From positions 2,767,972 through 2,831,971 of the forward strand of contig BDGG01000005.1 in assembly GCA_001949185.1 (NCBI GenBank): DNA of 64,000 bases, in the 5' to 3' direction. Under the pieces are notes generated by a model. The model worked only from the letters and a program-made list of their open reading frames with translations. It made no database searches and had not been told where the DNA came from. Both the position numbers and the translations under genes were made by a program. Position 1 is the stretch's first letter; each line of letters starts with the position of its first letter. Source of the DNA: Ramazzottius varieornatus (Eukaryota > Animalia > Tardigrada). Shown here in pieces: positions 1 through 21,434 of this stretch.

Positions 1-3000
1 TTCAGCAGAACACTTGGTACAAGATCGAAGTTACAAGGTACGTTTGACCGCCAGTCTCTTAATGGTTCTGGAAAGAACATGATGCTCATGAAATTCGTAG
101 GGTGAAGAACACGGCCCAACTCAGTGTGCTGCCCATGACGGAAGCCCTCAAGTTCGATCCGAAACTGATCAACGGTTCGACGGATGCCGGCTTCACTCGC
201 ATGGACTTGAACCGCTCCTCGGAGATGTATGTCGGCGGTCTTCCCAGCAACATTGACGATATTCCGGAGATCAAAGCGAAAGGCTTCTTTGGCTGCTTGG
301 GTCAGATCGCGATCGATGGTCAGCAGATCGGCTTGTGGAACTACAAGTCGGGCCAAGGCTGTGCCGGATGCGCAGCTGGGTAATGATTTACCACCGCATT
401 CGTTCTCTTCTATTCTTTTCTAGCTTGAGTGTGACATTGTTTTAAATTTTGTGCAGAAGAGCAGCTGAAAGTGGGGATGGCGGAACGTTCCGCTTTAATG
501 GCATGGGTTTCGCCAGTGCACCTCAGATAAAACGTTACAACAACAAAAGATACACCATCGCACTGACATTCCGCTCCTTCGATGAGAACGCACTACTGTT
601 TTTGTGCGCCAATGACAAAGAGCCACAGGTTTGTCGAAACTCAAAATTTGAGGCTGCAGAATAATCGCATTTTCCCCCCTCCCATTGGGATCATAAAGTT
701 ACACGGGTCGTGAAGCTGAAGTGAATTTGAAGGACTTCCCCAAGAGTTCGCATCGTTTGGCTACGTTAATTTTACAGGGTGACTTCATCAGTCTGGAACT
801 TCGCGACGGCAAAGTAGCATTCCAGTTTTACCTTGGCGGTCAGAATCACCTCCTCGTCATAACTTCCCGTCGCTTTAACACCGGAAGTTTCGTCAATGTT
901 CGCGCCGAACGATTCGACTACTATGCCGACTTACGTGTGGAAGATGACCACATCGCCGCCAGTCTGTCACCCAACAAACCGGACGGACTCGAGTTGGCTA
1001 GCCGAGAAATGTACTTTGGCGGGGTTCCTCCTGGCTTCGCTTTTCAATCCAAGTACAACATCACCTATAAACCTTTCATCGGCTGCATGAAAGACATCCA
1101 GGTATGATTCAAGCCTGTATGAGAGATGAACCACATCGTTTTCCCAAGTGGCGCGCTTTTTCACTGTTAATAGCTGGAAGCGTGCACCATTCGGGAGTGT
1201 TAGCCTAAGTGGCGCACGTTTTTATGTGATGTCAGCTGGAAGTTTGCGCCACTTGGGAAAACGATCTGGGGGATTTCGTTTGCCGCGATCTAATCGGTTT
1301 CAGTATGACTGGAAAATACGTTGACTGATGTGTCTCTAGGTGGATGTGACGTCAGTGGATCTGCTGTCCAAGACGGTTTACCATGTGGACGTGGAACAAG
1401 GTTGTAAGAGAAGATCCATACGAGATGTCAGCTTTAGCAATAGCAATGGATACCTGAAGCTGCCGGGCAAGACTTTGCTGGCTAATGCGTCGGTGAGCTT
1501 TTCCTTCGCTACGGGCCAGTCCGATGGGTTGCTGATTGCTTCCATCTCTGATAATTATAAGAACAATAAGAACTACTGGACGGCGAGCTTGCAGAGCGGC
1601 AAGCTGGTGCTTATTTTCAACAGCGGAAGCGGCAACACCAAAATTCAGGTGAGACCCGCATTATCGTACAAAGCTGACTGTGGTTCCTCGTGGCTTGCAA
1701 AGATATCCACCTCATGGACATCCGTAGAAGAGTGCCGTATCTCGTTCGGAACGATCGTTGTCATACGACAACCAGCCATTGAGTGATGCAGTGGTGTGAA
1801 AGTAGAATACGGTCTCCTGTTTATTTTTTTCCAGGTGGAGAATAAATATTACGACGATCGAGTTCTTCACACCGTATCCCTCCGTAAGCGTCGAAAGCGC
1901 ATCGAGCTTCGCGTAGACGACATGGAGATTCAAGAGGAGAAAGCCGCCTCCGATGGTAGCGAGGAGATTCTCTCCGACGTCATCTACGTGGGTGGCGCAC
2001 CCTCCAACGTCGACCTGTCGGCCATCGCCGCCTCCGCTCGCTCCTTCGTCGGTTGCGTCACCGGCCTCATCATCAACGGCGACTTGATCGGCTTCGAGCA
2101 ACTGCAGAGCTTCGACCACGCCGCCATCGGTCGCTGTGAGTTCGAGACACCTCAGTCGTCTCTCGAAGGACCGTTACTACCCACCGCACTGGCGCTGTCC
2201 CGACAACCTCGCCACTGTACTCCCTTCCCTAAACTCGTCAAGACACCGGAAGAGTGGCGAGCGGTAAGCTTTGGTGGTGGTGACGATAGTCGGGTCGAGG
2301 TCTTCCCGGCCAGGAAAGACACAAAGCTGTTCAACTTGACCATGTCAGTCAGGACGTTTAGGGAGGATGGCATACTCTTTTATGCGGAGAACCCGGCGGG
2401 CGAGCAAGTGCTGATGTTGTCCATGAACGAGGGGAAAATGATCTTGACCGTCGTTGACGAATCGCCTATGGTGAGTAAATTCCCCTCAGGACTGCGGCTT
2501 CGGCGACTGAATTGAATATGATCGCTGTCTCAAGTGACGCATGTTGGCCTTGTTAGGGGTCGAACGTGTGCGCCACTTTGGAAAGTCGACATCCGGCTTA
2601 TTGCCGACATTCTTGACATGAGTTATTCTTGCAGGAGATAGTGAGCCCGGCCAACTATTCGGATGGAAAGTGGCTTACTTTACGTTTGGAAAGGAAGCAG
2701 CGCAGGATTATCCTCCAGTTGGACGAGGGCGCGGAGGAGTACATCAAAGTGTCCAAGAAGTTCGTGGTGAGTTTGCCGTTCTTCATTGCGGGGATATCGG
2801 CAAGCGTACGCCCGCCAGCTGGCATCGACCGTACGGGCTTCCGCGGGTGCGTGGCCAACGTGACGTTCAATGACCGACCGATCAACCTTCTGGAAGAGAA
2901 GTCGGTTCGGGGTGTGGAAGCATGTTATGGCAATGCGGAATCGGCGGCGTTTTTCGAAGGCAACGGACACGCATTATACAGTGAGTACAGAAACCATCGA

Positions 3001-8678: not shown

Positions 8679-11600
8679 ATGAGTCGCCGTGTGGAGCCGT
8701 ATGATGAAGAAAATGACGAAATCGCCCAAGAAAAGAAAAAGATAAAGGCAAAGATGGCTGCTGAAGCCATAGAAGAAGCCAGGAAGAAAGCTCTGGAGCC
8801 ACAAGTTGCTGCGACACCACATCCGGGTTCGGATGATCTGGAAGCGCTAATGACCTGCTGCATCTGTATGGACCGCTTCCGTGTACCCAAAATGCTGCCG
8901 TGTCAGCACTCCTTCTGCGCTCACTGCCTAGAAGGTAATGTCCATGTAATGAGATGGAAATATCGTAAGGAAACGTCCGTGTTGGGAGAGTCAATTGTTA
9001 CCTGCGTACCGGACCAGTTCAAAACGGATCCTCCGTAACCGTTTCCCGGGGATAAAACTGCTCAATGAAATGCGAAGCAAACTGAACTCTCGAAAGCCTG
9101 AACAAATTTGTTTTTTAGGACTGTTCGATTGGGTCAAGAACCAGATCAAATGTCCAGAATGTCGAACGGAACACCGCTGCTCCAATCCAGATAACTTCCC
9201 AACGAACCTGACCATGGTCCGTTTCATGGAAGTGCATATCGAAGCGATGGGCGGAGATCCCGCTGACGCAATGGCTCCTCCACCGTCTCTTCAAAGATGC
9301 ACAGTCAGTAAACGGAACCTTTCCTGCCTAAATTTTGTTTATACTAGGATAAATTGCGATTATCCAACAGGCATTTAACCCGAGTCTAGCCGGCTCGTCC
9401 TGGTGGCTTATCCGTTGCCTTTTTATAGGTCTGTGGTGACAACGCCGAACTGTCCAAATGTAGCCACTGTGATCGCAAAGTCTGCACGGACTGCCGAGAT
9501 GGCCATATGGAGATTATGAAACGAGAACTGGGCCGTCTAATTAACCAAGTCAAACGCGGCGTGGTATGTGGAGAAAGCTCTTCCCCGTGACTAGGATATA
9601 TTTGTTCGTGTGCTGAATTTTAGTAATTTGAAAAGTGTTTATCGTCCACCGGGCTCGTAACATTAGCCGAACACAGATGAGAACAGAGTAGGATGAGGGC
9701 TTATCGAACATCAAGTTCTTTTCACTGACAACAAACAACACTACTGACGCACTTTCGCCCACTGCCTCAAAAATAGCGACTTTCACGTGACGTGGTGAAA
9801 ACAAAAATGCGATAATTTTGTTGAGGATCCATGTTAACCAAGATTCAAAACGGTAGATACGTAAAAAACTGAAACAGCTGGTCGGCTGAGTAATTTGTGA
9901 TCAATCAAAATACTTCATCCAAGAGCTTCACGTCACTGCAGCAACTTGGACCCATTACTTCCGGATCTAGCAGTATCTTCCACGATTTTTATGCGCCCAA
10001 GGTCTATAGCTTGAACTGTGCGTCAGACTCTCCTCTATCTCTCTGTGAAGCCGATTTGACAGCCAGGATTTAATGGGTGGCGTAATCCGCTTGGTAGTAA
10101 AATGGCTGACTCAACTTTTAATTGAACAGCCAACATTAATTTTCTTGGCTGATGATTAACGCGCTAAATCTCATGTGCCGAACGTACTTTTTACCATCTC
10201 TTTCGAAAGTAATTTTGACAATCTAGAGTGGTCTACGTCCTAACTTCTATTGGGATCTGAACAATACAATCGTTTCACTTTTCTAGTCACGTCTGGAGGA
10301 GTCAGCCGGTTGGATAGAGCGGAACGAAGCCCAATTGACGCAGAACTGCAGCGTTGTCCGCGAAGAAATCCAAGACGTCGTTCGTCGCTACCTCAAACAA
10401 ATTAAAGACAGAGAAGACCTTCTTCTCAACCAGGTCAACACGTTTCTACAAGCTGAGACGAAGTCCATGCAACACATGCAAGACAACATCGACGAGGAGA
10501 TCAAGACTCTAAACACAGCCGTCGAAGAAGCTCAAAAGCTCCTCGATCCCGAGTCCAACACGTCCATTGATGACGTCATGGGCGAGCTAAGCACTTTCAA
10601 AGAACAGTTTTCGAAGAGTGTCGACTTCTTGAAGAGCTTCACACCAGACGCCCAAGATTTCACCAAGAGCCTCAAGTTCGTACGAGGTTCTTCCGAAGGG
10701 GATTTACTTCATCAGTCCATCTTGGCTTTCGGAGAACTTCACGTCAGCACCCAGCACTTTAACAGGTTTGTACTGGATACTTTACGATGTGATATGCTTT
10801 ATTCATACAAGTCACTTTTACTTCAAAAGAGAGGACATCAATGAAACCAGGAGCATAAATTAAAATCGACAGATCACGAGGACGCAGGTTTTCCCTTTTC
10901 AAAATTTAGAACATAGAATATCTCTTTGAGTCCCTTAGTCTCCTTCAGAGTATCCATAACACGAAAAGCATTTCCGCGTTGGATGTCAAGAGACAGACGC
11001 CGATTGTCTCATAGTACGGAAAATATTGTGGTCTTTCGCAATGCAAGCTGAGTATGAAAAAACTTGCTGCAAGTGAAGTGAGGCGAAACTTGCCGGTTCA
11101 AAGCCAAGGCATGAGTATTATTTGTCACCCTGCTGTTGTACGGACAGGAAACCTCCGGAAGACTATGAAATTCCATCTTAATTTTTTAACAGGTTTGTCA
11201 GTAATTCGGAACGCATGGCGACGCTGCTGATCGAAAAGCAGTTCGAAGCCACCCTGGCTGAATTTTACCGTCAGCAACAAGAAGAAGCCGAACAAGCAGC
11301 CCGCCAAGCTGCTCGAACAGTACCTCAGCTGCCGCTACCTGAACTTGATAGCGGAAGGACCTTCCAAAGTGAGTACATGACGAGAAGGCAAGGTGAGAGT
11401 CTGCAAGAATATCGTGACCGCCGGCTGGAATCCTCGCCTTCTCGATTCACCACAGCCGAGCTTCCGACACCCAGGCCAGATTACAGTAGGGAGTCCAGCG
11501 CGCCGGCGTCGTACTTGGCGAGAGTCAGTCGTCTGACGGACACCAGCTCCAGTGGTGCGGATACAGCGACGTCTACGGCACGGGGTGGCGGATCAAGCGA

Positions 11601-13875
11601 GAGTACGTCCACGACAGGGAGTAATCGCCGACAGAAGTACAAGGATGGACGGTCGCATACGGCAGACCTGGGATTGCTGAGGGAAAGCACCGACGAGAGA
11701 CGTAACAGCGGGGATGATCTGGATGTTGAAGTAAGCATGTCACCTGTGTTAGAATTTTTCGAAATCAAACAAACCGTTATCGCGCCTATTTGCTCTGGGT
11801 CTTGAGTGTTATGAAAGATGCGCACGCAAAGTTTTGCACACATTGTTTTCCCCTTGGGTAAAACCTTGTGCGCACTGGTTCAAACCCATAAAGCTTAGTA
11901 AGGCAGACCGTAGTTTCCGTCTAAGTGTGAGCTTCGTTGGTACGATTTGAGCAGTGGTCTCAGTACTTTGTCGAGATTTTTCTGATGTTATTTCGATCTT
12001 TGGAGACTGGACTTGTGTAGGATCATCTAATTATTCTTTTTGCAGGTGGCTGAAGCCCTGTCGTCGAGAGGTCGTTACGCTCGCCGCGTTGAGTCACAAG
12101 ACAGTCAGGAAAGTGTCTCCGGAGACGGTCGTCGTGGTGGTCGTTACCGCGGTGGTTCCAAGACCACCGAGTTAAACGACGCCTTCGCCGTCCCCGACGT
12201 TGCCATCACACCCTCGCGTACACTATACCAGCGCGAGACTTCGACCTCCGACTCGCCACTTCGCACTAGCTCGACCCGTGGCGCCACTGCTACCAGCGCC
12301 GGTGCCAGTGCCTGTGAGCAGGCCATCAACCGTCGTCGACGTCGCTTTGCCACCCAGGCGTCACAAGAAGACACTACTCCAGCCATCACCACAACGCCAG
12401 CCTCAACCACCTCTTCATACTCGGCCCGTTCGCCATACAGTGCCAGTAGTGCCACCGGTGCCCGTTCAAGAGAAACCAGTCCGGTGCGTCGAGCCAGGAC
12501 ACCAGCACTGGATGAGTCGGATGATGAACTGGCCAGGGACCGAGAAGAACGTATGCCGTTTTATTCGCGCTATCTGGCGAATAAGGCAAAGTCGCGTGAA
12601 GTATCGCCGACGAACGAGTATCGAGCCAGCTCGACTGCACGGGATCTGGGTAGTGCTTCCAGCGCTCTTTCGCGAGATTCGGCCTACTTAAATAAAGGTA
12701 CGTGCACTTTCTTTACCGGCGCCTACACACCAGATTGATAGAACATGGAATTTTGCAGGTCGAACCTCAACAAAGATTGGAAGCCGGGGATCCGAAGCAG
12801 GGCAACTGAACTGGCCACGAGGCGTCGCTGCAGGATCGGATAATCGTGTGCTGGTTGCAGACTCATCAAATCACAGGGTTAGTGGCTCAGTGCATTTGAT
12901 TGTTCCATGATGTCGCATCGAGTGAGACAACGCTGTCAAATACGTGTAGAAATTGACAATTGCTTTTTATCCCCGGTTGCTGATTCCACAATTCAGCACT
13001 TTTATTCCATATAACGGTTCCTAACCTGACATGGACTGGTAAAACGCTTCTGCTCTTATCTGAAATACAATTTTTAACCCAGCAGTAACTGCCATTTTTG
13101 TTTGCTGGTGTGCTGCATTTTGTACAAGTTACGCGGCTTGTTATTCCAGGTGAGTATTTTCGAAAAGAACGGCACATACATGAAATCCTTCGGGAGCTAC
13201 GGGAGTGCTCCGGGCGAATTCGATTGCTTGGCCGGCCTTGCAGTAGCACCCGATGGTCGCATCGTTGTGGCCGACCGCTACAACCATCGCATCTCGGTCC
13301 ACGACGCCACGGGTCGCTTTATGACGGCGTTCGGCGGAGAAGGCCACACCGAAGGACTCTTCCAGTATCCATACGGCGTCTGCATCGGTAACGGTTACAT
13401 CTACGTGTGCGACAAGGACAACGCGCGGGTCCAGAAGTTCACACTGGACGGCCGTTTCGTCTCGAAGTTTGGCGGACCCGGTGTCAGACCCAACTCCCTT
13501 AACAACCCTCACTACATTGCCCTGTCCGCTTCTGGGGATCGCATCATCGTGGCTGACTCCGGTAACAACCGTATCCAGGTGTTTGACTCACGCGATGGTA
13601 CTCCGGTGACCATTGTGGGCGGCGAAGGAACGAACGAAGGGCAGTTTCAGTACCCAAGGGGCGTGGCGGTCGATGAGAACGACTACCTGTACGTAGCGGA
13701 CGCGGGCAACAACCGTATACAGATCTTCGGGAACAGAGACTACCGCTACGTATCCAGCTTTGGCAGCTGGGGAAACATGCTGGGAGAGTTCAAAGGCATC
13801 GAAGACCTGGCCATGACGCGAGATGGAAGCCTCCTGGTTGCTGATCGGGATAACCATCGTATTCAAGTTTTCTGA
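8679..13875 (+). CDS. nhl-1: TRIM-NHL protein (RING, B-box, coiled coil, low-complexity linker, NHL repeats), nhl-1/thin(abba) type; exons about 8679-8934, 9119-9303, 9430-9563, 10287-10765, 11193-11730, 12046-12697, 12759-12877, 13150-13875
   Basis: RING CCICMDRFRVPKMLPCQHSFCAHCL..CPECR; B-box-like C/H cluster at 9430-9510; coiled coil; NHL repeats LNWPRGVA, GEFDCLAGLAV, FQYPYGV, NNPHYIA, FQYPRGVAVD, DRDNHRIQVF*. Confidence 0.92.
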
Positions 13876-14163
13876 AAGATTTCCCTCACCACCCAGCCGA
13901 AGTCCGGCCAAGCAATCGAATTCGAACGACACCCTTGAAAACCCAACTTTTTTACCTAGCCTCGTTTCCAGTTAGTCCACTCAAGCTTGCCAGTTGTACA
14001 TTTACGCTGCGTTGCCTGCTGTAATTTATTGAGCAGCTGAGCTTTTGCTTTCGCCTTCGGCTTATATCTGTGATTGTGGCTTTATTTTTCTCTCCGGTTT
14101 TAACCTGCAATTTCGTGCGTGCAAATTTATCCAATAAGTGTTAGCAACCATATCGTTTTCCAG

Positions 14164-14295
14164 GACTATTCATCGCGGGCTTCGGCTGTGAAAGACGTCA
14201 TAGCGGATGCATCGGATGCCATCGGACGGGCAACCAACAACCGCAGCTCTAGCAGTGGATACAACTATCGTACACGCTACGTTCCGCGCTACTAA
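14164..14295 (+). CDS. nhl-1: Probable alternative terminal exon of the TRIM-NHL gene (NHL-less isoform)
   Basis: Acceptor TTTTCCAG followed by phase-0 open frame DYSSRASAVKDVIADASDAIGRATNNRSSSSGYNYRTRYVPRY*. The S/R/Y-rich composition resembles the linker. It is compatible with the phase-0 donor at 11730, and AATAAA follows at about 14504. Confidence 0.55.
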   Translation, partial: DYSSRASAVKDVIADASDAIGRATNNRSSSSGYNYRTRYVPRY

Positions 14296-14796
14296 ACCTT
14301 CTTCTCATCCAAGATATTTCTACGCAAGATAACCTATTGTTTGATCAGCGACTTACCTCGAGCTTTTTTGGACAGAGCTTTTAACGTCACAATGGTTTTA
14401 CGGCGATTGCAGAACCATGTTCATTTCACCACGTACAGTTATGCACGAGTCCATAGTACACTGTGTCTCGTACTTTCGGTACGCTGGTATCTGCAATATC
14501 CAGAATAAAATGTGACTCTACAAATTGGTGGTCGTCTCCCCATTCTTGCAACGGGACACGCGGTCGCCGGTCGGTATTTGTTGGCACCGACAGAGGCCGC
14601 AAGGGCGTAATACTTTATGCTTGATAAGTTTTCCGTGGGAGAGGGATGAAGACTCCTTTTCTCAGGTTGATAAGCTGCATCCATCCGTGAACTACACGGG
14701 AGGAAGACGGATTCCACGTCTGTACCGGTTCCATTAGCCCACCAACTCAATCCGAAATTCACCGTCAGATTCCAGGTTAAAAAAGACGCATCTTCT

Positions 14797-14916
14797 GCCT
14801 GCGACCATACCACGTAGAATGCTCCCGATCCCGTTCGATCTCGGAAGATAAGCTACGTCGGGTCCGGTTAGTACTTAGATGGGTGACCGCTTGGGAACAC
14901 CGGGTGTTGCAGGCTT
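14797..14916 (+). rRNA. 5S rRNA gene (single dispersed copy)
   Basis: 120 nt from GCCTGCGACCATACCACG through GATCCCGTTCGATCTCGGAAGATAAGC and TTAGTACTTAGATGGGTGACCGCTTGGGAACACCGGGTGTTGCAGGCTT. The ends are complementary and a T-run Pol III terminator follows. Confidence 0.96.
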
Positions 14917-15459
14917 CTTTTTACCGAAACGTACTAATTTGCTCACCTTCTGATACGCTTTCTTTCCGCTGAATTAGGCTGAATTTTTTTTCGTTCTGGG
15001 TTATTCTTCCGGTGTAGTTTTGAGCAGATACGAATGAGTGAGCTTCAAATCTTCCAGATCGCGCGAGTACGTCAAGCGGACGAATAAGTGTTCCAGCTTT
15101 GTAGAAACCGTCCTGGCAAATTAATACCAAGGACGACAGGGTACCTCGTACGACCGTGTTGAAACTGTGACGCCACCCAGTGCGATATCTGGGAATGCCA
15201 AAGCCTGATTGTTATACCGGCCACGTGGTAACCGGTCTATAAACAAATGTTCTATTGTCACGTGCCAAGCTTCGATATTGCGAATCGAGGGACTATGACG
15301 TCATGTGCTTGTATTTTGAATTTCGTTTGACGAGCGAGAGAAAATTCTAGTCTGTTGATTTCCAATCCACAGCGAACCGTGCGGAATCACCGAAAAGTCC
15401 CTCATTCCATCTGACTTCTTCTGCCTTTATCTCGTCTTCTGCCAGGATTATCCAAGAAG

Positions 15460-16818
15460 ATGTCGACCAAACAGTAAGTAGAGCTTGTCCTCAGCTTCTT
15501 TTCGGACTACAAGTGATCGTTGTTTGCTGTAGCGGAACGCCACAGACGACAGGCGGCACCGGAGCTGGATCTGGCAAGCAAGCCAAATCCGCCAGTGCTT
15601 CCAAGACAGATGGGGCCCAAGCTTCCAAGGGAGGAAAGCTTCCTCTTGTTCCAGAAACCTTGTTGAAGAAGAGGAAGCAAGCGGCAGCATCCCAGGCCAA
15701 GGCTGTGCGTAACGCTGTGAAGAGACGTCAAGTAAGATAAGAAACTAGAAATTTTTTGATTGTGACGGTGAGGGAAGTTATCTCTTGATTGTGTCATTCC
15801 AGCAAGCAAAACTGAAGCGAACAGTCATCTTCAAGAAGGCAGAGAGGTACATCAAGGAGTACCGATCGAAGGAACGTGATGAGATCAGACTGAAGAGACA
15901 GGCTAAGAAGAGCGACAACTTCTACGTGCCAGATGAGCCCAAGTTGGCTTTTGTGGTCCGTATCAAGGGGTAAGAAGCAAGTTTATCCATCTAAGAATGT
16001 TCTCCTATGATCCTGTTCGCTTCTTCTAAAGTATGGGATGAGTTGAGGAAGAGAGAATCCGGTTTCTGGTCGAGTGAAAATCACTGAAGGCTAAAAAATA
16101 CTGGAATTTGTTGAATTGCTTATTCGGTTGATTTTTGATTGCATGTCTCTGGACCGTTAAATCAATCAACTGACCGTTTGGTTGATTCTCTAGTGTCACC
16201 GGTGTGTCGCCCAAACCAAGGAAAGTCATGCAGCTGTTCCGTATCCGTCAGATCAACAACGGAGTATTCATCAAGCTCAACAAGGCTACCTTGAACATGC
16301 TGAGACTTGCGGATCCTTATATCACCTGGGGGTAAAGACAATTACGTCTGGGAAGGACTTCCGGTTGTTGGTACTTCGTAGGTAATAAAACAAAACACGA
16401 ACGAATGGTATTTATCTTCCAGATATCCCAACCTGAAGACTATCCGTGACTTAGTGTACAAACGTGGCTTTGCTAAGGCTCAGGGCCGTCGTATGCCACT
16501 CAGTGACAATGCCATCATCGAGAAAGCTCTTGGTAAGAAAGAATGAAAGATATTTCTTTTCAGAACTTTGTGAGTTTTGTTAGTTGATTGATTAGTGTAT
16601 TGATTGTAGGAAAATTCGGCATCATTTGCATCGAAGATTTAATCCATGAAATCTTCACTGTCGGTCCCCACTTCAAGCAAGCCACGAACTTCCTGTGGCC
16701 CTTCAAACTGAACAACCCCACTGGTGGATGGAGAAAGAAGACCACTCATTTCGTGGACGGCGGAGACTCTGGCAACCGAGAAGACAAACTGAACACTCTC
16801 ATGCGAAAAATGATTTAA
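15460..16818 (+). CDS. RPL7: 60S ribosomal protein L7 (uL30), 6 exons
   Basis: [94 protein letters not shown]. Confidence 0.97.
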
Positions 16819-19086: not shown

Positions 19087-19936
19087 TTATTACAGACGGT
19101 AAAAGCATCGCATCCGTACATGGTGGTTCTCGTTACAAAGACTATAACTGAAAGGAAAATTGCTTGACGAAACATTCCTTGACAACCAAACCGTGCTTTC
19201 ACTGAAAACTTTCCGCATGTCCGAAGCTGAAGTTACGGCCACAGTGGAGATAGAACCACAGTAGACTAACCGGCGGATGGGCAGATGTGACAAAACCTTT
19301 CATAATGCGCTGCACTACTCTGGGCCAAGCATCCTTGGTTTCCGAACTGAACCCAAAACCATTCAATCAAGGTCAGTGACAGAACTCTAGCGAGAACAAA
19401 ATGAAAGGCTTTCGTACCCATCGATCAGCTGGAGGACATGAGCTAACACGGCATCTTGACAAATAAACGATCACGCTGTCTTGGTTATCTGCTCGGCTTG
19501 GAAATTAAGTTAAACGCTCAAGCGGTAAGCATAATCGACCACAAAATGAAACGGGCCAGGGTTTTCAGACCTGGTAGGGGTATTCCGATCATCTGGATCC
19601 TGGGCAGAAAGCACTTATTAGTTTTCTGGACGTCGATAACAAACCGAGCATCTGGTTCAGACATTACGCGGAACCAAATCTGGCCTGCCTGTGAATCTTT
19701 GCCGTGGAAGAGGTCAGACGCTGGCGGCTAAAGTGCAGTTATTGATCGTGGTGTAATAACTCGGATAGAGAAACAGGTCGTACCGAAGAAACCATGCAGG
19801 TAGCGACAACCAAGTTGGCGTAAATACCTTGCTGATAGTCGTCTTTTGTGTGAATTCGAACCCTTTTCCAGAATCCAGATCACTGCATTCGTATGCGTTT
19901 TGTTGATCAACAACGTCCCGTGATTGAACTCGAGTA

Positions 19937-20212
19937 CAGGAGGAGTAAGCATGTGTGACCCAGTGAGGAAATGTGTGACNNNNNNNNNNNNNNNNNNNNN
20001 NNNNNNNNNNNNNNNNNNNNNNNNNNNNNACATGTATCATGTATGCATTACGTTAACAGAAACACTTTTTATGTAAGATGGACAACACTATAATTCGTTA
20101 CGTCATAGGCTTTATTTTAATTACGAGTGTCTCATGCTTTTCTATGGATGCGCCGTCTGAGACTACTGGGTCACACATTTCCTCACTGGGTCACACATGC
20201 TTACTCCTCCTG
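19937..20212. mobile_element. Tc1/mariner-type MITE spanning the assembly gap
   Basis: TA on both sides (19935-19936, 20213-20214). The 43 readable bases at 19937-19979 are a perfect inverted copy of 20170-20212, begin with CAG, and contain internal TGTGTGAC direct repeats. Confidence 0.8.
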
Positions 20213-21434
20213 TACCAAATTTTCCATTGGTGTGTGGAAGATGTTTCAGCCAGCTTCGTGTCACTGCATTGAAGCTTTCTGCTAGATGGATGTCAATGAA
20301 TTCACCCCTAAGGATTCTTGGAAGTTTGTCACGGAGACTTGGAACGCTCACCAACGAGGAGGTAAGAAGTGTTTTCTGCATACCCAAATCCTCCGACTCC
20401 TGTTCTTCTTTAAACAAATAATTCTGCAGAGCGGTGTTCAATCTAATCGCTCTTCTGAGTTTCTTCTGCGCCTCGTACAGATCCCGACTGCACTTCCTTT
20501 TTGATCCAGCGTCGCGTTTCGGAAAATCCATCTTCAGTACGGTCGTCCTTCCCTCTTCGCGATCTGGTTTCACTGGAAGTTCCAACGAGAAGTCAGGTAC
20601 GGTCAGATCGTTCAAAGACTTCGAACGTTCAGAGAGGTAGTCCACTTTGCAACCGTGTTCCGTCAGGATGAAACCCTCCGACTTCACTTTGTAGAGACTT
20701 TTCCAGTTCTTCCCCCTCTTCTTAACGCACTTTTCTTGATTAAAATCGAAGACAGTTTTTTGAGGACATGCACAAGCAAGATCGTGTTCGGAGTGAGGCA
20801 ACACCGTTTGAGATGTCTGAAATGTTCCTGTGGTTCTCCACAACCATTCCAAACCATCTCGTACATCCTTATTGATAAACTTTTTCTGCATTCGACAAGC
20901 TTTGGTCTTTACAACCGTTCTGCTGGCTTCCTTGTCGAGAATCACTTCTATCGCTAAGGCATTCAAAGATTCCTCCACAACACATCGGTGATTTTTTCGC
21001 AGAATTTCGACCATACGATTGGCCAACAGAAACAAAACAGGTTTACCAGCGAGGAACTTTTGCTGTAGGAATATACGGATAGCTCGTCGGACAATGTCCG
21101 AGACAAATGCGATGCCTTCAGCTACAAACACAATGCAGTTGCTGTACTGTGCGATCGCATGTTCAAATTCATGGCTGACCATCAGCTCTTTGCACGAGCC
21201 CAGAGACTTCCAGTTTAGCATCAGCCAGTTCGACTGATCAATAAGGGGCAGGTCCGAACCATGACGGCGATTTGGCTGTTGAGTCGCTTTCGATATGGCG
21301 TCGTAAAACATGTGGAAGATAGACAGAGGTTTATCCGGCTGACGGGTGGTTAGCTCGAAGTCCAGACAAATCAGCACTGGGTTCATCTGGTATCCAGCAG
21401 GCGGAAGTGACTTGCCTCGTCTCCACAGCTGCAC
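20163..21434 (-). CDS. Uncharacterised protein with a degenerate Arf/Arl-like domain and coiled coil; 3' end interrupted by the MITE
   Basis: 423-codon ORF with FYDAISKA, CIVFVAE, KPVLFLLAN and DGLEWLW. The last 16 aa are read from the MITE TIR. Confidence 0.7.
   Translation of the reverse strand: MQLWRRGKSLPPAGYQMNPVLICLDFELTTRQPDKPLSIFHMFYDAISKATQQPNRRHGSDLPLIDQSNWLMLNWKSLGSCKELMVSHEFEHAIAQYSNCIVFVAEGIAFVSDIVRRAIRIFLQQKFLAGKPVLFLLANRMVEILRKNHRCVVEESLNALAIEVILDKEASRTVVKTKACRMQKKFINKDVRDGLEWLWRTTGTFQTSQTVLPHSEHDLACACPQKTVFDFNQEKCVKKRGKNWKSLYKVKSEGFILTEHGCKVDYLSERSKSLNDLTVPDFSLELPVKPDREEGRTTVLKMDFPKRDAGSKRKCSRDLYEAQKKLRRAIRLNTALQNYLFKEEQESEDLGMQKTLLTSSLVSVPSLRDKLPRILRGEFIDIHLAESFNAVTRSWLKHLPHTNGKFGTGGVSMCDPVRKCVTQ

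Follow-up and report, generated by a model that had tools for sequence, protein, structure and literature searches.

The nhl-1 (TRIM2/3-like) gene of the tardigrade Ramazzottius varieornatus contains a 25-nt inverted repeat, both arms of which lie within a segment that is kept in one spliced isoform and removed in the other, and pairing between the arms may favour the isoform that lacks the NHL domain. The gene was studied in a 64,000-nt stretch of contig BDGG01000005.1 (assembly GCA_001949185.1, positions 2,767,972 to 2,831,971 of the forward strand), referred to below as the window; positions without a prefix are window positions. nhl-1 encodes RING, B-box, coiled-coil and NHL domains. Its public model is RvY_10817 ("hypothetical protein RvY_10817 [Ramazzottius varieornatus]"), and its nearest named relatives are the entries "RING finger protein nhl-1" of Paramacrobiotus metropolitanus and Hypsibius exemplaris.

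Two nhl-1 isoforms with different C-termini

Transcript structure was derived from the RNA contigs of four runs (X4, X5, X7 and X14), each from a different study, mapped on positions 10500–15500. These contigs report majority bases only, minor variants being dropped. Contig cover over the other nhl-1 introns was zero, which establishes that the runs represent RNA. According to the contigs, the donor after 12877 has two alternative acceptors, and the downstream exon starts either at 13150 or at 14164. The distal joint (12877>14164, skipping 1286 nt, GT..AG) was present in all four runs, and the proximal joint (12877>13150, skipping 272 nt, GT..AG) was listed in run X5. An unbroken contig spanning 13149–14192 passes both the stop codon and the distal acceptor; the NHL exon therefore continues into the common 3′ end, and a single polyadenylation (polyA) site near 14520 serves both isoforms.

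Use of the proximal acceptor yields the full NHL-propeller protein, which terminates at a TGA codon (13873–13875) and is followed by a 3′ untranslated region (3′UTR) running on to the common polyA site. When the distal acceptor is used, the entire NHL-coding stretch is lost and a tail of 43 aa is appended instead. The public 831-aa RvY_10817 ends in exactly this tail and omits an intact, expressed and conserved exon encoding 241 aa of the NHL domain. Contig depths in run X5, a rough measure, were 56.2 upstream of the alternative splice, approximately the sum of 34.7 for the distal, 15.4 for the proximal and 6.5 for the unspliced form. These rough depths suggest that the distal, NHL-less form is the major isoform.

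The 272-nt intron upstream of the NHL exon was the sole nhl-1 intron that appeared retained, being covered by contigs 12885–13175, 12905–13260 and 13041–13263 in three of the four runs. It is either retained or slowly spliced. Its retention would close the reading frame after 10 codons.

Proteins were compared exon by exon, each exon singly; the Paramacrobiotus orthologue was obtained from a full HMMER scan, while the Hypsibius protein and the annotated protein of the window came from the region search. The NHL exon was intact and 72–73% identical to the Hypsibius and Paramacrobiotus orthologues. It exhibited no excess of lineage-specific changes, with 27 in R. varieornatus compared to 25 in Hypsibius and 21 in Paramacrobiotus. 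Purifying selection consequently acts on the exon, which must be translated, and its evolution at the same rate as in the two other tardigrades indicates that both isoforms matter. A search of the R. varieornatus genome (55.84 Mb in 200 contigs as searched; published span 55.83 Mb, PMC5531438) revealed no close paralogue of nhl-1. A metagenome scan for orthologous DNA returned nothing above 47% identity and no tardigrade locus.

A unique 25-nt inverted repeat

Arm 1 (13215–13239, in the NHL exon) and arm 2 (13900–13924, in the 3′UTR of the NHL isoform) are reverse-complementary at 24 of 25 positions, 21 of them contiguous, with 660 nt between the arms. The single mismatch is C:U (13236/13903), and the remaining 24 pairs are all Watson–Crick. 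None of the dinucleotide shuffles of the UTR segment produced a 21/21 or a 24/25 match. The 20-mer core occurs at only two sites in the 55.8-Mb genome, namely the two arms, and the UTR around arm 2 is single-copy. Both arms, with the C:U mismatch included, were unchanged in the RNA contigs of all four runs. This agreement among runs of two strains and four studies shows that the repeat is real DNA and no assembly artefact. The 25-mer had been picked out in a first-pass annotation made from the sequence alone, and its description there as a 24/25 match with 21 contiguous pairs about 660 nt apart was confirmed; in addition, the pair proved to be unique in the genome and far beyond chance in shuffles.

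No similarity between the two regions was found beyond the 25-mer, identity in register being 25–35%. Uniqueness of the sequence in the genome ruled out a repeat family or miniature inverted-repeat transposable element (MITE) as the source. An old, decayed inverted duplication of an NHL repeat was likewise ruled out by the lack of flank similarity and by the minus-strand motifs, which fall in three frames.

The background rate of such repeats was assessed in 264 kb of sampled DNA. Five perfect inverted repeats of at least 18 nt within 3 kb were found, and among those of at least 21 nt the nhl-1 pair was the only one that did not abut an assembly gap. Inverted repeats with a GCGCCACTTGG-type core were observed at window positions 1135–1154 / 1246–1265 and at L029:7866–7882 / 9857–9873. 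A 46-nt perfect inverted repeat was present at 19934–19979 / 20170–20215; one arm abuts a gap of 50 N (19980–20029) and the other lies in a 423-aa minus-strand open reading frame (ORF). This repeat is probably a gap or scaffolding artefact.

Predicted folding of the 3′ region

Folding of 12757–14300 (1544 nt) with ViennaRNA placed the two arms in a helix in the minimum free energy (MFE) structure, with a pair probability of ~1.0. The isolated 25-nt duplex had a predicted free energy of −50.3 kcal/mol. A larger fold had been proposed in the first-pass annotation, in which several helices of the UTR fold back in nested order to mask the NHL exons or serve as a source of endogenous small interfering RNA (endo-siRNA). 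The predicted fold of 12750–14170 as a whole was no different from its shuffled controls, the MFE being not lower than that of 40 dinucleotide shuffles (z = −0.33).

The match counts of the three weaker helices (12/15, 13/15 and 10/13) were reproduced, yet all three were at chance level: in shuffles, windows with at least 12/15 matches were expected 1.24 times, 13/15 occurred in 8% and 10/13 in every shuffle. Ensemble pairing probabilities were 0 for two of these helices, while the outer helix (13959–13973/12809–12823), which is nested as described, reached 0.66 and is the point in favour of a multi-helix fold. The reading of the UTR minus strand as a "mosaic of NHL peptide motifs" did not hold, as these motifs are spread over three reading frames. 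No miRNA-like local hairpin was found around arm 2; in its absence, one 25-bp stem closing a 660-nt loop is an unlikely source of endo-siRNA. Overall, the nested fold-back and the endo-siRNA source together appear very improbable.

A competing helix between 13894–13906 and 14176–14188 was rejected, being at chance level and having a pairing probability of 0 in the full fold. The search for known RNA families (Rfam) returned only a 5S rRNA gene downstream of nhl-1. The 25-mer is a real and non-random feature, predicted to form one sharp helix and no structured domain.

Position of the arms and a proposed splicing mechanism

Both arms lie within the alternatively removed segment, arm 1 at 65 nt past the proximal acceptor and arm 2 at 239 nt before the distal acceptor. 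The proximal site reads ttccag followed directly by GTGAGT (13149/13150). This is the only GTRAGT in 12700–14300, and it is closer to the donor consensus than the real donors of nhl-1. The stretch 13150–14163 is itself a GT..AG unit of 1014 nt. The mean intron of the genome is ~180 nt, as calculated from 889 bp of intron span and 5.02 introns per gene (PMC5531438), and the other nhl-1 introns measure 61–427 nt. An intron of 1014–1286 nt is therefore unusually long.

Based on this geometry, we tentatively propose, at slightly less than even chance, that the helix acts as an intron-bridging stem which favours the distal acceptor and raises the share of the NHL-less isoform. We infer that the stem would form in vivo in the pre-mRNA between the two arms, looping out 660 nt. 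This would cut the donor's path to the distal acceptor from 1286 nt to ~600 nt, or, if counted from the GTGAGT at 13150, from 1014 nt to ~300 nt. Such paths would be nearer to the intron sizes usual in this genome, and the distal acceptor would be favoured. The distal product could arise either in one step or via re-splicing from the donor regenerated at 13150; the re-spliced and the direct 12877>14164 products are identical, so the contigs cannot separate the two routes. Since the proximal acceptor is not looped out, the effect would come from approximation alone, perhaps strengthened if the first 90 nt of the NHL exon became occluded. That the stem shifts acceptor choice, and in this direction, is what we infer from the layout.

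A role in 3′-exon choice had already been suggested in the first-pass annotation, which attributed it to masking of the NHL exons. The presence of two competing acceptors and the location of both arms inside the removed segment lend real support to that suggestion, whereas the geometry is one of bridging the intron ends and not of masking. As a hypothesis, the link between the helix and 3′-exon choice is now much better grounded than before.

Comparison with known long-range RNA structures

The closest parallel was found in intron 4 of Drosophila Nmnat, where boxes ~350 nt apart form a stem that brings a distal acceptor >400 nt downstream near the donor, as demonstrated by disruptive and compensatory mutations (Raker et al. 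2009, PMC2724269). In both genes, two competing acceptors give alternative C-termini, and the distal acceptor is remote by the standard of the genome's introns. In both, a stem hundreds of nucleotides wide draws (in nhl-1, would draw) the distal site to the donor, and one box may sit in an alternative terminal exon. The nhl-1 arms also agree with what characterizes splicing-modulating long-range stems in general: the boxes are at least 9 nt long, stable, and located inside an alternative intron near its ends. In contrast to the Nmnat boxes, which flank and loop out the proximal acceptor, the nhl-1 arms are both downstream of it. Furthermore, the Nmnat stem is conserved in 12 species and proven by compensatory mutations, whereas the nhl-1 stem is known from the sequence of one species and from predicted pairing. 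In nhl-1, unlike Nmnat, one arm is protein-coding and both isoforms use one polyA site.

Pairs of conserved complementary regions (PCCRs), or "RNA bridges", in human pre-mRNAs are likewise tied to alternative splicing (Kalmykova et al. 2021, PMC8052449). The nhl-1 pair resembles them as a long-range complementary pair within one alternatively spliced pre-mRNA. However, conservation defines that class, and the nhl-1 pair is known from R. varieornatus alone.

Two further systems share parts of the arrangement. Pairing between the intron ends shortens long introns in yeast, as in RP51B. The nhl-1 segment is similar in having complementary segments near its 5′ end and upstream of its 3′ end in an unusually long intron; it differs in that this "intron" is also a conserved coding exon whose removal is optional. 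Recursive splice sites occur in long introns of Drosophila. The acceptor AG followed by GTGAGT at 13149/13150 has the juxtaposition typical of these sites, as the first splice regenerates a donor. Unlike at recursive sites, the segment downstream in nhl-1 is a functional coding exon, and the final product is the same as that of direct splicing.

Origin of arm 2 and the possibility of an inert scar

The FDCLAG motif encoded by arm 1 did not vary among the three tardigrades, a barnacle and two other relatives. Arm 1 is therefore the ancient, protein-constrained arm, and arm 2, consequently, is its derived partner. The all-Watson–Crick pairing and the sharp ends of the helix fit a templated inverted copy, and this is the most likely way in which arm 2 would have arisen, whatever its present role.

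Several observations weigh against a splicing role of the stem. Unlike in Nmnat, the proximal acceptor lies outside the helix loop, and arm 2 is transcribed ~750 nt after this acceptor; co-transcriptional splicing could pre-empt the stem. Scrambling arm 2 cost just 8.4 kcal/mol of the global MFE. Two of the four runs derive from a strain diverged by ~0.5%, which is too close to inform on conservation. The 43-aa tail had no homologue in the protein database and points to a young, lineage-specific arrangement. The same is indicated by the last three helix pairs, which fall on a Leu codon at a position occupied by Ile in both Hypsibius and Paramacrobiotus; this hints weakly at an origin of the complement later than that replacement, within the Ramazzottius lineage. 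The sharp ends, the purely Watson–Crick helix and the absence of flank similarity give the repeat the look of a recent, perhaps unselected, copy.

The latter features would be expected if arm 2 were an inert scar, that is, if a template switch during replication had placed an inverted copy of 25 nt of the NHL exon in the 3′UTR, leaving a young and harmless repeat without a selected effect or without any effect. Beyond the sharp borders, the base pairing and the random flanks, this explanation accounts for the Leu codon at the helix end, specific to R. varieornatus among the three tardigrades, and for the lone mismatch, in which C13236 is the synonymous third position of a Gly codon opposite U13903, fitting ~3% neutral divergence since copying. 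The genome also has other non-chance inverted repeats. It is well established that perfect inverted repeats and RNA hairpins can arise by template switching (Loytynoja and Goldman 2017, PMC5453318; Monttinen and Loytynoja 2022, PMC8794818), and the nhl-1 repeat is alike in being a sharp-ended, perfect inverted copy of nearby sequence that would create an RNA stem in one step. However, the 660-nt span is long for this class and exceeds the short-range events of PMC5453318. By a rough estimate, chance placement inside a rare long alternative intron, with arms near both of its ends, is improbable. In addition, the sampled DNA holds few perfect repeats that reach 21 nt, and a pre-mRNA stem of −50 kcal/mol is unlikely to be physically silent. 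Taken together, we consider an inert scar, the main rival of the intron-bridging stem, rather unlikely.

The templated copy and the intron-bridging stem could also be combined in a single event, in which one inverted copy in the Ramazzottius lineage created the bridging stem, made the NHL exon, with the consensus donor at its start, a mostly removed "coding intron" and left a main product without the RNA-binding NHL propeller. Such a copy would possibly act through re-splicing of the NHL mRNA precursor. This one-step origin is a doubtful extension of the intron-bridging proposal.

A possible role of the helix in mature mRNA

The helix might instead act after splicing, since the NHL isoform is the only spliced product that keeps both arms. 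In this case, a double-stranded element between the coding sequence and the 3′UTR would be bound by double-stranded RNA-binding proteins. The NHL isoform would then be controlled specifically, whether by editing of its E-F-D codons by ADAR, by Staufen-type decay or by lowered translation. Twenty-one perfect pairs, the contiguous run in the nhl-1 helix, suffice for binding by a double-stranded RNA-binding domain (dsRBD). Matches to PF02137 (A_deamin) next to matches to PF00035 (dsrm) were found at two genome loci, C4:3504123–3506204 and C2:3184120–3185830, which are likely ADAR genes. A third A_deamin locus (C2:3220181–3221155), with no dsrm match nearby, may be ADAT1-like. The literature search returned nothing specific on tardigrade ADAR.

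As at known ADAR editing sites, a site in a coding exon pairs with a downstream non-coding complement in a genome with ADAR-like genes. The nhl-1 helix differs from specific editing sites in being perfectly paired, without their typical A:C mismatches and bulges, and in showing no majority-level A-to-G change: none was observed in either arm in the four RNA contig sets, which give majority bases and would not show low-level editing. Moreover, editing would recode an invariant motif and would probably be harmful, and translating ribosomes would open the helix at each pass. A function of the helix in the mature NHL mRNA therefore seems improbable.

Layout of the locus and neighbouring features

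The features of the nhl-1 3′ region are listed in Table 1.

Table 1. Features of the 3′ region of nhl-1 in window coordinates
Feature	Position	Strand	Remarks
Common upstream exon, first NHL repeat, ends in the common donor	12759..12877	+	RNA contig joints and boundaries read; GT at 12878–12879
272-nt intron, removed with the proximal acceptor	12878..13149	+	Joint skipping 272 nt; partly retained in 3/4 runs
1286-nt intron of the short isoform, GT..AG, holds both arms	12878..14163	+	Joint skipping 1286 nt, 4/4 runs
NHL-domain coding part of the proximal terminal exon, 241 aa + TGA	13150..13875	+	RNA contigs; not in RvY_10817
GTGAGT immediately 3′ of the proximal acceptor AG	13150..13155	+	Putative donor
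Arm 1	13215..13239	+	In NHL exon; third base of a Gly codon and codons E-F-D-C-L-A-G-L
Arm 2	13900..13924	+	3′UTR of the NHL isoform, intron of the short isoform; begins 25 nt past the stop
Coding part of the distal terminal exon, 43-aa tail + TAA	14164..14295	+	C-terminus of the annotated 831-aa protein
AATAAA signal, common to both isoforms	14504..14509	+	Contig ends between 14473 and 14573

The 427-nt intron of nhl-1 carries the same 14 nt (TTTAACAGGTTTGT) at both ends (10752–10771 and 11179–11198), which makes placement of the splice junction ambiguous. Direct repeats in this position have sometimes been connected with the gain of introns through duplication.

In the transcribed parts of 10500–15500, runs X5 and X7 (2022 studies) had 23 fixed single-base differences from the reference in common, and X4 and X14 had none. 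At least two strains are thus present under one organism label in the public RNA data.

The 5S rRNA gene (Rfam RF00001, 111 bits) is located at 14797–14915 on the forward strand, ~280 nt past the nhl-1 polyA signal. RNA contigs at this gene carried unlike flanks, as expected of a multi-copy gene. Very high RNA contig depth from 15343–15500 on marks the start of a ribosomal protein L7-like neighbour (ORFs 15513–15973).

Significance

If the splicing role proposed here holds, nhl-1 would add another long-range stem to the known class of those that modulate alternative splicing. A stem that sets the ratio of NHL to NHL-less isoforms would represent a clear case, outside flies and mammals, of a splicing switch controlled by RNA structure, operating in a compact genome with introns averaging <200 nt, and its origin might trace to a single template-switch event. 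Should the one-step origin be true, a single mutation would have created a new major isoform of a conserved TRIM-NHL gene. Whatever the stem does, the omission of the NHL domain from the public model affects inventories of tardigrade TRIM-NHL RNA regulators.

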